Below, one piece after another: positions 24,076-61,084 of a stretch of 64,000 nucleotides of DNA. Position 1 is the stretch's first letter. Each line of letters opens with the position of its first letter. The stretch lies in sequence record MZ574431.2; one strand, given 5' to 3'. A program made the translations under genes and the position numbers. The notes below the pieces were generated by a model. It saw only the letters and a program-made list of their open reading frames with translations. It searched no databases and was not told the DNA's origin.

Positions 24076-25122
24076 ATGGGCGACTGGAAGCAACAGCTTG
24101 TGGCCCAGGCCAAGGGCATGCCCTTGGACATCGAGCCGCTGGTGGCTTCGCCACCCAGACCGCCCGCGCCGCAACCCTTGCGCCGGCGCCGCCCGATCCT
24201 GACCGACGCCGAGCGCCAGATGCTTGGGATCGGCGTGGGTCCGACCCCAAAACAACCCGGCGGCAAGCGTAAGTTCAAGACGCCCCGCACCCGTCCATTC
24301 AAAGGTCCGCGCGCCTGCGTGCTGTTGGTCAGGGAGGCCAAGGTCCTGAATAAGAAACCGCGCATGGCCCGCCTGCGAGGCCGGAAGGTTCCGATGCTGG
24401 CGACCCGCACGCCGTTCAACTACGACAAGGCCATGGACCTGCGCGAAGCGGGAATCTCGGTGCAGAACATCGCCACGGCGCTGGATGTGTCGCCGCTGGC
24501 GATCCGGGCCTTCGTCAACACCTACGCCAGCCACGTCAAGGCCACGCGAGGGTCCAACCTCTCCGAAGAGGTTCAAGACCAGATCGTCAAGACCTATGCG
24601 CAAGGCGGCGTCACCCAGGCCCAGGTGGCCAAGCAGTTTGGCGTCAGCGGTCCGACAGTCTGCAACATTATCCGGCGGCGTGCGCCAGGGCTAGGCAAGT
24701 CCATGCGGCGCTATGCCTTCCACCCCAACCGCAGACTGGACATCGAAGAGGCGGCGGCTGCCTACGAGGCGGGTCAGACCTTGCGCGAGATCGCCAAGGC
24801 CCAAGGGGTGTCACAGAACGCCGTCTACCTGAACCTGAAGACCTATGCGCCACAGGTGATGGAGGCCAAGCGTCTGGAGCGCCTCGCCGCTAAGGCTGCC
24901 AAGGAAGCCCAGCGGCTCACCAAGCTGAAGGCCAAGGAACCGACCCTCGGTTATAGCTTCAACGCGACCCTGGCGATCCGCACCCTGCGCGCCGGCGGCT
25001 CGCGCCAAAACGTGCTCGACTACTTCAAGATCAGTCGAAGCACGCTGGCTCGGATGCTGAGCAAGGAAGCGCCCGATCTCCTGCGCCCCAGAGCGGGACG
25101 CCCCCACAAGGAGACGACGTGA
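24076..25122 (+). CDS. tandem four-HTH DNA-binding protein with basic N-terminus
   Basis: four HTH repeats, e.g. YAQGGVTQAQVAKQFGVSGPTVCNII. Confidence 0.75.
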   Translation: MGDWKQQLVAQAKGMPLDIEPLVASPPRPPAPQPLRRRRPILTDAERQMLGIGVGPTPKQPGGKRKFKTPRTRPFKGPRACVLLVREAKVLNKKPRMARLRGRKVPMLATRTPFNYDKAMDLREAGISVQNIATALDVSPLAIRAFVNTYASHVKATRGSNLSEEVQDQIVKTYAQGGVTQAQVAKQFGVSGPTVCNIIRRRAPGLGKSMRRYAFHPNRRLDIEEAAAAYEAGQTLREIAKAQGVSQNAVYLNLKTYAPQVMEAKRLERLAAKAAKEAQRLTKLKAKEPTLGYSFNATLAIRTLRAGGSRQNVLDYFKISRSTLARMLSKEAPDLLRPRAGRPHKETT

Positions 25123-25158
25123 CGCCCTGAAAAGGTGACGCCGTGAGGATGTGACGAC
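25119..25158 (+). repeat. three GTGACG direct repeats, 16-bp period
   Basis: GTGACG at 25119, 25135, 25151. Confidence 0.6.
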
Positions 25159-25267
25159 CTGACAGGCGCCGGCCGATTGAAAGTGAGGCCGCGTCTGATT
25201 GAAGACTTGAAATCGCGAGCGGGTCGCCGAAGGCGGCGCGTGATGCGGCCATGAACAAGGAACCTGG

Positions 25268-28523: not shown

Positions 28524-28868
28524 ATGAAGAATTTGCTCACCCCTGAGGCCGTGGCTGACCTGGATTGGATGTATCCCACCCAGCAAGACCGCAAAGCTTT
28601 GATTTCATTCATCAATGAGTCTTTCGAAGGGACAAGCTTCGCCGACCGCATGGCGCGCGACAGTCACATCGCCGCCTTGGCGCCGAACCGCAAGACCCGC
28701 GAACACCTGCGCGCCCTCCTGCTGCGCTCCCGCCTTGGCGCGGGCCTGGGACTGAAGAAGACGCCCACGCGGACGGCCATCCTCTGGCTCTTGAACCATC
28801 ACGCGCCCCTGGCCGCAAGCCTGCACCCAGAAGCGATCGCGCTGGCGCGGGTTTCGCCCCCTCAGTAG
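28524..28868 (+). CDS. hypothetical protein
   Basis: ORF directly after promoter. Confidence 0.55.
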   Translation: MKNLLTPEAVADLDWMYPTQQDRKALISFINESFEGTSFADRMARDSHIAALAPNRKTREHLRALLLRSRLGAGLGLKKTPTRTAILWLLNHHAPLAASLHPEAIALARVSPPQ

Positions 28869-28948
28869 CGGAGTGTGCCGCGCGAAGCGCTCGCGTTATG
28901 GTTTTTCAAAGTTGCCTGACGGTTGTCGTATCAACAGGTTTTTCTCGC

Positions 28949-29260
28949 ATGACGAGTCCCAGGTCCCGCCGTTCAGGCACGCCCCCGCGAGGCGATCTCT
29001 CACGCCCTAAGTCCTCCAGCCATCGCTATGTGATCGACCAGCGCTGGTACTCCACCGAGGAGGTCCATGGCCTCATCGTCCAGACCCTGCCCAAGCTGAA
29101 ACCCAACGCCCGCACCTGCGACCAGTTGGTCCTGCATCTGGGCTCGGCCGATCTCTCCCAGGGCACGCTCAGCCGCATGCTCAAAACCCTGGCCAAGAAG
29201 GGCGTGCTCGATCAAGTCGCCCACGGCCGCTACACCCTGCCCGCCAAGGACCCCCGATGA
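28949..29260 (+). CDS. small winged-helix DNA-binding protein
   Basis: LSQGTLSRMLKTLAKKGVL.QVAHGRY. Confidence 0.65.
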   Translation: MTSPRSRRSGTPPRGDLSRPKSSSHRYVIDQRWYSTEEVHGLIVQTLPKLKPNARTCDQLVLHLGSADLSQGTLSRMLKTLAKKGVLDQVAHGRYTLPAKDPR

Positions 29261-30453
29261 CCGAGCCCAAGAAGAGAGGCCGCCGCGCCGGCGAGAGCAA
29301 CAAGACCCGCTACATCAACGGCGTGGCCTTCGAGACCCGCGAGTTCGTCAACAAGCTGATCGAGACCATCAACGCCCTGCGCGATCTGCCTGTCCCCACC
29401 GTCCAGGGCATCGTCGACCTGTGGGCCGATCCCTACTGGACCAGCACCGAGGGCGACCTTGATCTGCGCCGCTGCCTGCATCGCATGCACCAGCAGGGCA
29501 ACCTGATCCGCGAGACGCGCGGCGTCTACCGGGTGTCGGACGTCCTGCACCTGCGCGCCTCCCATGATCTGCAACTGATCGCCGAGCGCACCTTGCGCGA
29601 CCTGGGGGGGTTCGCCTCGGCCAAGACCCTGCGTAGGGCCATGGGCTATTCGGCCGAGGAAGCCGTCAACGCCAACCTCTGGCACGCCCTGCGCCTGGAA
29701 GGCTCGCGCATCCGCCGCGACTTCCGCGAGCGCTACCTTTACAACCTCCCCGCCGAGGACCTGCGCAACCTCGTCCTGGCCGGCAAGTGGGCGCTGCCCT
29801 ACTATCGCGGGGTCTATCTGGGCATGGCCAGCGCCGAACCGGGCGAGCGTCCCTGGCGCGCGCTCGTTGATCTGCACATCACCGCCGTCGGGTCGGCCTT
29901 CCAGACCGCGCGGCTGATCTGCGGCCTGGAGATCGAGGACCTGATCGCCCTCAAGCCGAACCGCGTCGACGGCGAGAGCCCCCACGTCTATCCCGATCTG
30001 GTCAAGGCCATCGACGCGGCGCGCTACGCCAATCCAGCCCGGCGATCGGTCAGCGAGTATCGCCGCGAGATCAAGAACAAGGTCGTCGTCGGACAGCGCG
30101 AGAACCGCAATGGCCGCCTCGTCGACGAGGTCGCCGAAATCCCGATCGAGGATCACGAGGAAAAAGCCGTCTTCGCCGACGACCTGCGCCGCGCCTTCCT
30201 GCGCTCTATCGAGAGCCCCGGCGCCGATCCTGATCCGCGCTATCTCGACGACAGCGACTATCGCTTCCTGCCGGCCGAGTTCTTCACCGCCGCCGCCGCG
30301 ATCTTCAAATGCGATCCCGTCGACCTGTCCTGGGGACGGGTGGGGCCGCGCGCCGACCTCGGCTGGCATACACGACGCGACAGCCGCAACCACGCTCAGC
30401 CCGAGTTCGAGGATGAAGACCTCACCGAAGAGGGCGATCGCCAGGAGACCTGA
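29257..30453 (+). CDS. 398-aa protein with N-terminal wHTH-like segments
   Basis: L.RMHQQG.LIR..RGVY wing motif; adjacent to repeat block. Confidence 0.6.
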   Translation: MTEPKKRGRRAGESNKTRYINGVAFETREFVNKLIETINALRDLPVPTVQGIVDLWADPYWTSTEGDLDLRRCLHRMHQQGNLIRETRGVYRVSDVLHLRASHDLQLIAERTLRDLGGFASAKTLRRAMGYSAEEAVNANLWHALRLEGSRIRRDFRERYLYNLPAEDLRNLVLAGKWALPYYRGVYLGMASAEPGERPWRALVDLHITAVGSAFQTARLICGLEIEDLIALKPNRVDGESPHVYPDLVKAIDAARYANPARRSVSEYRREIKNKVVVGQRENRNGRLVDEVAEIPIEDHEEKAVFADDLRRAFLRSIESPGADPDPRYLDDSDYRFLPAEFFTAAAAIFKCDPVDLSWGRVGPRADLGWHTRRDSRNHAQPEFEDEDLTEEGDRQET

Positions 30454-30593
30454 AACCCTTGGCGTGCTTGGCCCGAAGGGCCTTTTAGGGGCTGCCCGGT
30501 CATGAAAAATAGACAGGTAAGACTCTTGGTGTACTGAAAGACAACAAAAAGACTAGACCTGAACAGGGGGTGGGCGGTGCAGACACGGCCTGC

Positions 30594-30792
30594 CCCTATA
30601 AGCTTATACACATACATGGTGTATTAAACGACAAGGGAACGACATACTCAGGAGCGGCGGAAAAGGTCCCTTCCCTATAAGCTTATACACATACATGGTG
30701 TATTAAACGACATATAAAAGGTATGAGCCACAGGCTCTCACAGACATGCCGCCCTTATAAGCTACACCACATACATGGTGTATTAAATGACA
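30594..30792. repeat. three 40-bp direct repeats at an exact 79-bp period with unique 39-bp spacers
   Basis: CCCTATAAGCTTATACACATACATGGTGTATTAAACGACA at 30594 and 30673 (identical), degenerate copy at 30752. Confidence 0.9.
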
Positions 30793-30849
30793 TGTTAAAG
30801 GCATCACTCCCCCACTCCACACAGGAGACAGGGCGAAGCTTTCTCACAA

Positions 30850-30960
30850 CCACACTCCCTATCATTCTTTTTATTTATTATTAAATACACCAATTTATCC
30901 CTCTTATAGAATAGGAAAAGAAGGAATCTTCTACTTTGGTGTAAAAAGAGTAGAGACAAC
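30850..30960. other. AT-rich tract (possible unwinding element)
   Basis: TTCTTTTTATTTATTATTAAAT... in a GC-rich genome. Confidence 0.55.
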
Positions 30961-31029
30961 CTTTGAGAGAGTGATCCCCAGCCTGCATGGTCCAGACGAA
31001 GAGACGATGAGAGGACGGCGAAGGGAGGG

Positions 31030-31108
31030 CGACACGATTTGCGACACCTCCCGGTAGGACGACACCGAGGGGACGATCCTGACCAGCCGACGTCACGACA
31101 CCCGACAC
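31030..31108 (+). repeat. five CGACAC hexamers
   Basis: at 31030, 31042, 31060, 31096, 31103. Confidence 0.65.
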
Positions 31109-31395
31109 CGCGATGATGAGTGCGCGACCGGCGAACGGAGGGCGCAGCCCGAGTGAGGTGGGAGGCGTAGCTGACCTGGACTCCTGGTGATCGAACCGTC
31201 CTGGCTCCAGCCGCTCGATGCCGAGGTCTTCGAGGATTCTGGGGAAACTGATCCCGACCGGCGACGAGGGCGAAGCCCGAGGCGGTGGGATGGGGCGTCG
31301 ATCATGACCCATGTCGTGTTTGTTGACATGTGTCACGTGACGTGGCATGAAGGATTCAAGATGGTTAACGGACACCATCTTCAGGACCTCCCGAA

Positions 31396-32124
31396 ATGTT
31401 CACGCCCATCCGCGCCGCCAGCCTCGACGACCCCCGCCCCCAACTGGGCGATGGGGCTGTTCTGACCGCCGCCGTCAAGCTGGTGCTGCCCAGCTTCGTC
31501 GAGTGGACCAAGGCGCGCGGTCTGGACCTGACCGACGAGCAGATCACCTTCGCGGTGGAACTCGCGCTCAAGCAGTCCAAGACCGCCGGCGCGGATTGGG
31601 CCTGGACTTCGGCCAAGGTCCTGGAGACCGCCTTTGGCCTGCCCGGCGATGGCAAGCTGATCGCCCGCCTCGAAGCGGTGATCGCCAACCAGAAGCTGGC
31701 CTGGGAGCGCGAGACGCGCGCCTGGGTCCTGCGCACCGGCTATCGCATCCCGGCCGACGAGCAGGAGAAGGTCGAGGCCCTGGTCGAGGGCGTGCCCGTC
31801 GTTGGCAAGATCGTCGGCGTCTCGCGCGGCCTGGGCGTGGCCTATCTCCAGACCGAGGACGGGACCCAGACCTTCCGCATCGACGGCGAGGACATCATCG
31901 CCAACCACACCCAGGGCCGCTTTGCCCCCGAGACCCCGATCCTGGGCTCGCGCTATGAGGATGCGCCGGCCCTGGCGCTGGCCGCCGAGGCGCAGCGTCG
32001 CAAGAAGCCGGCCGGCAAGTTCGCCCAGCCGGCGAGCGATGCACGCACCCGCCAGCAACAGATCGCCGACGCCTACAAGGCCGGCACGTTCGGCGCGGAC
32101 GCCGATGGTCCTGGAGTCGCCTGA
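31396..32124 (+). CDS. hypothetical protein
   Basis: 242 aa; TTGACA at 31323 upstream. Confidence 0.7.
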   Translation: MFTPIRAASLDDPRPQLGDGAVLTAAVKLVLPSFVEWTKARGLDLTDEQITFAVELALKQSKTAGADWAWTSAKVLETAFGLPGDGKLIARLEAVIANQKLAWERETRAWVLRTGYRIPADEQEKVEALVEGVPVVGKIVGVSRGLGVAYLQTEDGTQTFRIDGEDIIANHTQGRFAPETPILGSRYEDAPALALAAEAQRRKKPAGKFAQPASDARTRQQQIADAYKAGTFGADADGPGVA

Positions 32125-41504: not shown

Positions 41505-41780
41505 GGTTAACGAAGAAGGTTAACGGCCGGTTAACCATTGGGCCGTTAGGGTTAATTTTTAGGGTTAACACCCATGGTAAACAAACATGGTTAACGCGCC
41601 TTAAGGTTAACCGTTAGGGTTAATGCGCGTTAAGGTTAACGCCCTTAGGGTAAAGGGGCCGTTAGGGTTAACGCCCAGGCCCGCAGCGTTAAGGTTAACC
41701 CCGCCAGGGCGCGCGTTAGGGTTAATCCCGAGGCCCTGAGGCGTTAAGGTTAACGAAAAGGGCCAAAAATTAGGGTTAAG
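41505..41780. repeat. dense cluster of TTARGGTTAA decamers / CtrA-like boxes
   Basis: 10 exact decamers (41546-41770) plus TTAA-N7-TTAA at 41520. Confidence 0.85.
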
Positions 41781-42552: not shown

Positions 42553-42567
42553 CCTGGCGCCCAGCCG

Positions 42568-42640
42568 TTAAGGTTAACCCGGCGTTAAGGTTAACGCCCC
42601 ATTAGGGTTAACGCCGCGTTAGGGTTAATCGGCCATTAAC
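42568..42640. promoter_or_regulatory. chain of four TTAA-N7-TTAR boxes, 17-bp period
   Basis: TTAA at 42574, 42591, 42608, 42625, each followed after 7 nt by TTAA/TTAG. Confidence 0.75.
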
Positions 42641-45130: not shown

Positions 45131-45145
45131 CTGCTGGCCCTAGGC

Positions 45146-45174
45146 GTTAACCTTAACCGGGCGTTAGGGTTAAC
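45146..45174. promoter_or_regulatory. 29-bp TTAA four-box palindrome
   Basis: GTTAACCTTAA-CCGGGCG-TTAGGGTTAAC. Confidence 0.75.
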
Positions 45175-45228
45175 GGGGCGTAAACAAACATGGTTAACGC
45201 GGCCCATGGTCAGCCCAGGCGAAAAGGT

Positions 45229-48957: not shown

Positions 48958-49101
48958 CCATCTGGGACTAGCCTGGGCGGCCCTGGCTGGGAAACCAGCC
49001 GGGGCGCAAGGCCGCCGGCCGGCGTTAAGGTTAACCTCTCTCGCCCGGCAGTTAAGGTTAAACCCGCCGCCCAGGCCGTTAACCAAGGCGCCCAAGAAAG
49101 T

Positions 49102-60995: not shown

Positions 60996-61084
60996 TTAAC
61001 CTTAACGCGCAACCGTTCTCAGGTTAACCTTAACGTGAAAACGGTTGCAGGTTAACCTTAACCCCGCCCGCCCAGGCCTTAACC
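60996..61084. promoter_or_regulatory. three direct TTAACCTTAAC copies at 28-bp period
   Basis: at 60996, 61024, 61052; internal GCAACCGTT/AACGGTTGC dyad. Confidence 0.75.

Follow-up and report, generated by a model that had tools for sequence, protein, structure and literature searches.

The gp471-gp473 interval and its repeat array

The terminal 64 kb of the record of Caulobacter phage J4 (MZ574431.2), hereafter the window, carries a repeat array in the interval between genes gp471 and gp473, and it is this array, together with the two winged-helix genes that precede it, that we consider here. J4 is a jumbo phage of 312 kb (Bertelyvirus, Dolichocephalovirinae); the 2.5 kb surrounding the array are 100% identical to it, and J4, RB23 and BL47 are 100% identical across the array. 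The array is flanked by gp471 (plus strand, ending at 30453), by an annotated minus-strand open reading frame (ORF), gp472c (30881-31378), and then by gp473 (plus strand, starting at 31396), with terminase genes annotated about 5 kb downstream. We rejected gp472c as a real gene because its similarity in the related phages C1, CcrSC and CcrBL9 requires two to three frame changes; its C-terminus also enters DNA of 25% GC, and the ORF is not called in the CcrSC, CcrBL9 and phiCbK records. Judging from these comparisons gp472c is almost certainly a spurious annotation, and the entire interval 30454-31395 (~940 bp) would therefore be non-coding.

Three direct copies of one unit lie at 30592-30645, 30671-30724 and 30751-30804. 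The first two copies agree at all 40 nt of 30594-30633 and 30673-30712, and copy 3 is 80% identical over 54 nt, so that the identical 40-bp pair with a degenerate third described in the first-pass annotation of this DNA was borne out, although not its exact 79-bp period, as the spacing is 79 and then 80 bp. Divided from core to core, all on the plus strand, unit 1 (30594-30672) consists of the 40-nt core identical to that of unit 2 plus a GC-richer linker, unit 2 occupies 30673-30752, and the diverged unit 3 occupies 30753-30832. The count of three direct copies also stood, but further copies had been missed. These are a degenerate unit 0 on the plus strand (30505-30565; TGGTGTA core at 30527, a match with three mismatches), an inverted unit described below, and a partial forward unit 5 (30899-30960; TGGTGTA at 30937) that runs into a conserved AGAGTAGAGA-type purine box and is kept in C1, where it belongs to the shared backbone. 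A profile built from 12 units of four phages matched only 30593-30832 and, weakly, unit 0 (30527-30596, E = 0.17).

The units are oriented and non-palindromic, with AT-rich cores of 45-55 bp and GC-richer linkers; an AAAGG-type block ends each core and CCC(C)T begins the next. The intervening segments had been taken for unique 39-bp spacers, a description that fails since their 3′ parts share an ACAGG..CTT(C/G)CCC-type motif across units and phages. The unit motif was found nowhere else in the 64-kb window, shuffles of the window gave 0.00-0.02 expected chance matches to the core motifs, and the observed direct-repeat score was reached in 0 of 100 shuffles. The repeat is therefore real and non-random and, being unique in 64 kb, not a general promoter.

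Directly past the direct units lies unit 4, an inverted, AT-enriched copy on the minus strand (~30862-30898), recognized from inverted repeats I1, I2 and I6 and from its match to the phage's own unit: it scores 35 against the J4 unit and 12-21 against the units of other phages. The inverted unit sits within the AT-richest 60-mer of the window (30860-30919, 20% GC, the next lowest being 33%), a candidate unwinding element. When the corresponding AT tract of each lineage was reverse-complemented it matched its own direct unit best in 8 of 12 lineages, with a mean score of 28.7 against 16.0 for the units of other phages (permutation P < 5e-5) and a null result for the forward-orientation control. 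The inverted copy is an AT-enriched unit whose differences from the direct units are not limited to G-U-compatible changes, and a DNA-level element is therefore favored over RNA pairing. Adjoining this tract are the 120 nt with the highest purine content in the window (30908-31032, 67.5% A+G on the plus strand, ~4 standard deviations above the mean), so that both compositional extremes of the 64 kb stand side by side immediately beyond the array. A tract of 65-70% purine follows the AT minimum in 8 of 14 lineages.

Co-exchange with gp470 and gp471, and conservation across relatives

The two genes preceding the array encode predicted winged-helix proteins. The annotated gp470 (28949-29260, plus strand) is small, overlaps the start of gp471 by 4 nt and shows a weak IclR/MarR/AbiEi-type helix-turn-helix (HTH) at residues 84-118; a small gene homologous to it stands immediately 5′ of the gp471-like gene in eight loci. 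The 398-residue product of gp471 (29257-30453, plus strand) is the candidate unit-binding protein. Its structural model (predicted local distance difference test score 81.6) shows a pair of winged-helix domains at the N-terminus (~residues 23-98 and 99-173) followed by a C-terminal domain, and its fold matches are generic and weak, namely the C-terminal winged helices of SelB and the winged-helix domains of MarR, IclR, DtxR and MCM. Searches for a function of gp471 in Pfam, PHROGs, NCBIfam, PADLOC, PDB sequences, Foldseek, VIA and a protein atlas returned only winged-helix/AbiEi-like HTH assignments, with no relationship to Rep, Q, sigma or any other specific family detected, and 22 homologs were found.

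Comparison of J4 with C1 ties the array to these genes. Identity between the two phages is 90% up to ~28531 and 96% from 30826 onward, and a short segment in between (28845-29002) reaches 81%. Over 29002-30826 they cannot be aligned. This exchangeable block takes in the greater part of gp470, gp471 in its entirety and exactly the three direct units, its right edge (~30826) falling in unit 3. The protein identities run in opposite directions on either side of the array, since J4 gp471 is 48-49% identical to its counterparts in CcrSC and CcrBL9 and 29% identical to that in C1, whereas for gp473 the values are 63-65% and 96%, respectively. The same pattern was observed independently between Rogue and CcrBL10. 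On these alignments, the direct units travel as one cassette with gp470 and gp471. One observation on gp473 itself may be added: in BL47 (locus L003, 4897-5876) its homolog is annotated as two overlapping coding sequences, with the protein match likewise split in two, pointing to a frameshift with respect to J4.

A gap at the same position is present in CcrSC, CcrBL9, C1, phiCbK, Karma, Magneto, Rogue, CcrBL10, Colossus and Brevundimonas phage Bajun, always in the order gp471-like gene, 0.55-1.0 kb of non-coding DNA, gp473-like gene, Holliday junction resolvase and terminase. Conservation of the anatomy is thus subfamily-wide, and it extends to the internal order of the gap: a hairpin 3′ of the upstream gene, two to three direct units, the inverted copy in its AT-rich tract, the purine-rich box, conserved GC-rich blocks, and a TTGACA-type promoter with a palindrome. 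The period of the direct units is 74-80 bp (70-71 bp in C1) and is conserved between distant lineages even where the unit sequences themselves are unalignable. Gaps following genes of the gp471 family contain a significant direct repeat in 16 of 18 cases, mostly at a lag of 71-80 bp, and a significant inverted copy in 13 of 18. Metagenomic homologs of gp471, down to ~30% identity, precede the same type of array (loci L010, L013, L015, L017, L018, L026, L028 and L029); locus L014 has neither gap nor array. The units of L013 (4497-4668 of SRR30451309_34278) contain DnaA-box-like motifs, TGTGGATAA and variants with one mismatch, amounting to six matches at up to two mismatches against 1.4 expected, and an HTH gene stands between the gp471-like gene and the array of that locus. 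A scan of viral contigs for further loci gave only CcrSC and CcrBL9, one metagenome scan with the conserved block A described below found nothing, and a looser block pattern gave 43 chance matches without relatives of gp470, gp471 or gp473. We found no description of this region in the literature on phiCbK, CcrSC, CcrBL9 and Bertelyvirus.

The remainder of the interval contains several other features, all on the plus strand. Just past the gp471 stop, a GC hairpin readable directly from the sequence (GGCCC-GAA-GGGCC followed by TTTT, 30470-30486) forms a weak terminator-like site; its folding energy is not significant (z = -0.25), and Colossus has an annotated terminator at the equivalent place. 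Downstream of the purine tract, alignment of five lineages revealed a nearly invariant GC-rich element with a GGGC-GNA-GCCC mini-hairpin, block A (31123-31167), in surroundings that are ~53% identical on average, and block B (31253-31293), a second, shorter copy of the same motif (GACCGGCGA..GGGCG[C/A]AGCCCGAG..). The block A hairpin is not significant by energy alone; CcrBL9 retains its outer stem via a compensatory change. A large conserved RNA fold in the downstream GC-rich part was considered and rejected because the covariation term was unfavorable. Just 5′ of gp473 lies a promoter-like block (31303-31369) with TTGACA at 31323-31328, the palindrome GTCACGTGAC at 31332-31341 and GGTTAAC at 31363-31369, which is kept in J4, phiCbK, Rogue, Colossus and Brevundimonas phage Bajun and, from its sequence, looks like a host-type promoter with an operator.

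Elsewhere in the window, tandem repeats of 16-34 bp based on GTTAAGGTTAAC create TTAA-N7-TTAA (CtrA-box) sites at 41563-41754, 42564-42639, 45143-45185, 49012-49082 and 60996-61062. Clusters of CtrA sites that agree with these have been described before in the terminal repeats of phiCbK-like phages (PMC9437464). Neither CtrA boxes nor clustering of GANTC was found in the arrays. Overlapping tandem repeats with periods of 8, 16 and 24 bp (GACGCCCCCAAAAGGAGACGACGT-like) occupy 25097-25163, and no tRNAs were found.

What does the array do?

We consider it probable that the array is a DNA recognition array linked to gp470 and gp471, in which the phased and oriented units of ~75-80 bp would serve as cis-acting DNA sites for gp471 and probably also for gp470. 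That the cores are oriented, non-palindromic, 45-55 bp long and unique in the segment argues for such an array, as do the arrangement of two to three direct copies with one inverted copy at a period that is conserved without its sequence, and the fact that two winged-helix genes are exchanged along with the units. Protein binding, melting and replication at the array are what we infer from this anatomy, in the following way. The two tandem winged-helix domains of gp471 would bind each direct unit as well as the facing inverted unit, and the resulting multi-protein complex would strain the 60-bp, 20%-GC tract that holds the inverted unit until it opened. The opened tract could then start phage DNA replication, making the locus an origin composed of initiator, repeats and unwinding element, and rightward transcription through the purine-rich tract, forming an R-loop, may aid priming.

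That the array is a replication origin specifically we hold only tentatively, but it is the leading role for two reasons. First, next to the array come the most easily melted DNA of the 64 kb and, after it, the DNA with the strongest purine skew. Second, the phiCbK-like phages encode a T7-type DNA polymerase and no initiator or origin has been identified for them (PMC3556154), a combination that R-loop priming would also suit. By analogy, such an origin could be either initiator-driven, as in iteron replicons, or transcription-aided, as in the primary origin of T7 and oriF/oriG of T4. In common with iteron origins, we found direct repeats and an inverted copy beside an AT-rich tract and an adjacent gene that co-varies with the repeats; a known Rep family and iterons of ~17-22 bp about two helical turns apart were not found. 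In common with R-loop origins, an AT-rich tract is followed by a purine-rich non-template strand. The DnaA-box-like motifs of L013 also fit an origin. An iteron origin had been among the roles offered in the first-pass annotation, and it is the only one of these role families that fits the evidence, albeit with the discrepancies in unit size and Rep family just given.

Several observations weigh against this interpretation. With cores of 45-55 bp repeated every 74-80 bp, the units do not resemble classical iterons, no relationship of gp471 to Rep_3/RepA, lambda O or DnaA-type initiators was detectable, and the DnaA-box enrichment of L013 is absent from the arrays of the Caulobacter phages. There is no turning point of GC skew at the locus, and we found no helically phased A/T periodicity of 10-11 bp in the array. 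The inverted copy of C1 does not match C1's own units, and the copy may therefore not be essential. Furthermore, the locus is preceded by a terminator-like site and followed by a conserved operon, a setting that would suit a transcription switch just as well, and two zero-mismatch contigs from RNA-type sequencing runs of wastewater mean that the array could be transcribed. The first of these, from a metatranscriptome, is 226 nt long and joins 30496-30593 to 30673-30800 with one unit collapsed, at a depth of ~2 and with nothing on the flanking genes; the second, from another run, covers 31053-31224 and again leaves the neighboring genes uncovered.

If the array were such a transcription switch, which we regard as possible although rather doubtful, the units would be activator-dependent tandem promoters or operators by which gp471 and gp470 control whether the rightward operon (gp473, Holliday junction resolvase, small and large terminase) is expressed, in the manner of the lambdoid Q/qut and repressor/operator cassettes. 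The array does lie past a terminator-like hairpin and ahead of this conserved operon, its asymmetric, oriented and AT-rich units are of promoter-like size, linkage to DNA-binding genes is what would be expected of a regulator and its sites, the conserved operator-like palindrome and TTGACA promoter stand downstream, and the contigs from the gap come from RNA-type libraries. However, a consensus scan found no sigma-70-type promoter in 30300-31500 and alignment of the units, judged by eye, showed no -35/-10 pair common to the cassettes, on which grounds host sigma-70/sigma-73 tandem promoters were rejected. The operon, moreover, has its own strongly conserved TTGACA promoter, the unit motif recurs nowhere else in the 64 kb, and a switch leaves unexplained the inverted unit that is aimed back at the array from within an extreme AT tract.

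An unlikely possibility is a novel type of phage replication or control element: the units would be 'giant iterons' of ~78 bp that wrap an oligomer formed by a hitherto uncharacterized family of tandem winged-helix proteins, or else the array would be transcribed, with gp471 as the RNA-binding partner of a repetitive non-coding RNA. Exchangeable specificity cassettes of the former kind could prevent cross-activation between co-infecting phiCbK-like phages.

A non-coding RNA array, in which ~30496-30845 would be an abundant RNA whose units are bound by gp471 as a sponge, decoy or scaffold, appears improbable. It would account for the 226-nt contig, for the finding that the adjacent 10 kb are not covered to at least 5% in any run, and for the fact that the best fold matches of gp471, weak as they are, are to the SelB winged-helix domains, the end of that protein that binds selenocysteine insertion sequence RNA. 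The read evidence is biased because the runs were selected using this stretch, and DNA carry-over could explain a coverage of ~4%; of the two runs, one is flagged as probably DNA. The inverted copy also diverges by AT enrichment and not by pair-preserving changes, and no Rfam match was obtained.

The case for an RNA had originally been made from structure, on the premise that selection maintains variable stems joined by constant linkers, and this premise did not survive comparison with shuffled sequences. The 12-bp palindrome TATAAGCTTATA is present at 30597-30608 and 30676-30687, as is the ATACAC-N7-GTGTAT hairpin, but the palindrome is disrupted in copy 3, C1, CcrSC, CcrBL9 and other lineages retain neither dyad, and a 6-bp dyad arm occurs in ~15% of shuffled cores. 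Conserved core dyads were rejected accordingly, as their length does not exceed that in shuffles (28 cores combined, p = 0.13). The variable segments, reported to pair end-to-end, do possess short complementary ends, because the conserved unit ends (AAAGG-type at the close, CCC(C)T at the opening) produce an AGGG...CCCT complementarity, but folding of the internal segments does not exceed that of dinucleotide-shuffled controls (J4, z = -0.10 and -1.19; C1 and CcrBL9, ~0 or positive), and shuffle tests over 35 segments from 11 lineages led us to reject structured spacers. The negative mean over those segments stems from the first hairpin past the upstream gene (z of about -3.3 in J4 and -3.5 in CcrBL9, and -7.3 for the Colossus terminator). 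In J4 this is the sole strong hairpin, located between units 0 and 1 (30567-30596, plus strand) with 13 pairs, three of them G-T/G-U pairs on the plus strand, and large hairpins occur at the equivalent place in CcrSC and CcrBL9. Its G-U pairs, workable only on the plus strand, would favor an RNA, and it scores z = -3.27 as RNA, -3.47 as DNA and -0.69 on the minus strand. The whole array folds better than shuffles, but equally so on both strands (z = -2.94 and -2.90).

Another type of DNA-transaction site, either a terminase packaging site or an accessory site at which a small tyrosine recombinase resolves concatemers, with gp470 and gp471 as architectural proteins, is very improbable. Lambda cosB and attP-type sites have direct and inverted protein sites around an AT-rich center, which the present locus resembles, and the terminase genes are ~5 kb downstream. 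The recombinase of phiCbK has no arm-binding domain and 'could require an accessory protein' (PMC3556154). Against these points, the recombinase gene is far from the locus, and packaging starts within the large-terminase gene, several kb from the array (PMC3556154), which disfavors the packaging and recombination readings alike. On packaging itself, we note that the segment 38588-38647, which at 35% GC is among the most AT-rich 60-mers of the window, lies inside the large-terminase gene, ~20-80 nt past the position equivalent to codon 652. It is a possible terminal-repeat boundary or packaging start because codon 652 of this gene is where Gill et al. placed the left end of the phiCbK genome.

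Finally, an orphan mini-CRISPR (clustered regularly interspaced short palindromic repeats), an RNA anti-CRISPR repeat decoy or a ToxI-like type III antitoxin can be virtually dismissed. Only the geometry of ~40-bp repeats alternating with ~39-bp variable segments speaks for these roles. The 'spacers' are homologous between units and between phages, an inverted copy is present, J4, RB23 and BL47 do not differ across the array, and each of the five Bertelyvirus-type cassettes that we examined has three units. No cas genes are annotated within 6 kb (as had been stated) and no toxN-like gene is nearby, the flanking proteins yielding only winged-helix matches. The recommended database comparisons were negative: Rfam gave no CRISPR-repeat match at the gathering threshold over the window, nor any at E up to 5 over 30400-31450, and a search of 50,697 phage records with the spacers returned only the array's own relatives and no protospacer-like match. 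The ToxI match, which lies on the minus strand in the AT tract, scores 18 bits where the gathering score is 50 (E = 2.5) and was discarded as noise.

Comparison with known systems

In Caulobacter cell-cycle research phiCbK and its relatives are in standard use as tools, and no origin, initiator or late-gene switch has been defined for this family (PMC3556154). The module described here is a concrete and testable candidate, comprising two proteins, defined sites and a melting tract, and the natural swaps between J4 and C1 and between Rogue and CcrBL10 constitute ready-made specificity experiments. Our analysis also corrects the annotation, in that gp472c is almost certainly not a gene, and removes a false CRISPR/RNA lead.

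How does the module compare with systems that are better understood? CRISPR arrays and ToxI repeats are alike only in their alternation of ~40-nt constant and variable segments. The lambdoid cassettes (Q/qut, the immunity regions and Nu1/cosB) share a more meaningful property, namely the swapping of a DNA-binding gene together with its adjacent cognate sites between otherwise near-identical phages. They have, however, neither this repeat geometry nor the AT and purine extremes, and we found no homology of the J4 proteins to Q, CI/Cro or Nu1.

The primary origin of T7 consists of two tandem promoters, phi1.1A and phi1.1B, ~75 bp apart and followed by an AT-rich tract, and oriF and oriG of T4 and the RNA II origin of ColE1 likewise combine a promoter with an unwinding element. 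Tandem oriented units at ~75-80 bp, an extreme AT tract and a purine-skewed non-template strand are all features that the giant-phage locus has in common with these origins, and the family shares with T7 its type of DNA polymerase (PMC3556154). The differences are that no phage RNA polymerase is known here, that the units do not match the host promoter consensus, and that an inverted unit is present.

The iteron replicons (pSC101 RepA, F RepE, R6K pi and, among phages, lambda O/ori) differ from the J4 module in having iterons of 17-22 bp at ~22 bp where the J4-type cores recur at 74-80 bp, and in their initiators, to which gp471 has no detectable relationship of sequence or fold (Rep_3/RepA, lambda O). 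In addition, the phage cassette includes a second small winged-helix gene, and host DnaA boxes are found here in one metagenomic lineage only. Nevertheless, they resemble it in their direct repeats with an inverted copy, in the AT-rich tract, in the adjacent gene for a protein with two winged helices, and in the exchange of protein and repeats as a specificity cassette. Taken together, these comparisons lead us to conclude that the element is probably a specificity cassette of this general kind, a DNA-binding protein plus its repeats, with an origin of replication as its leading candidate role.

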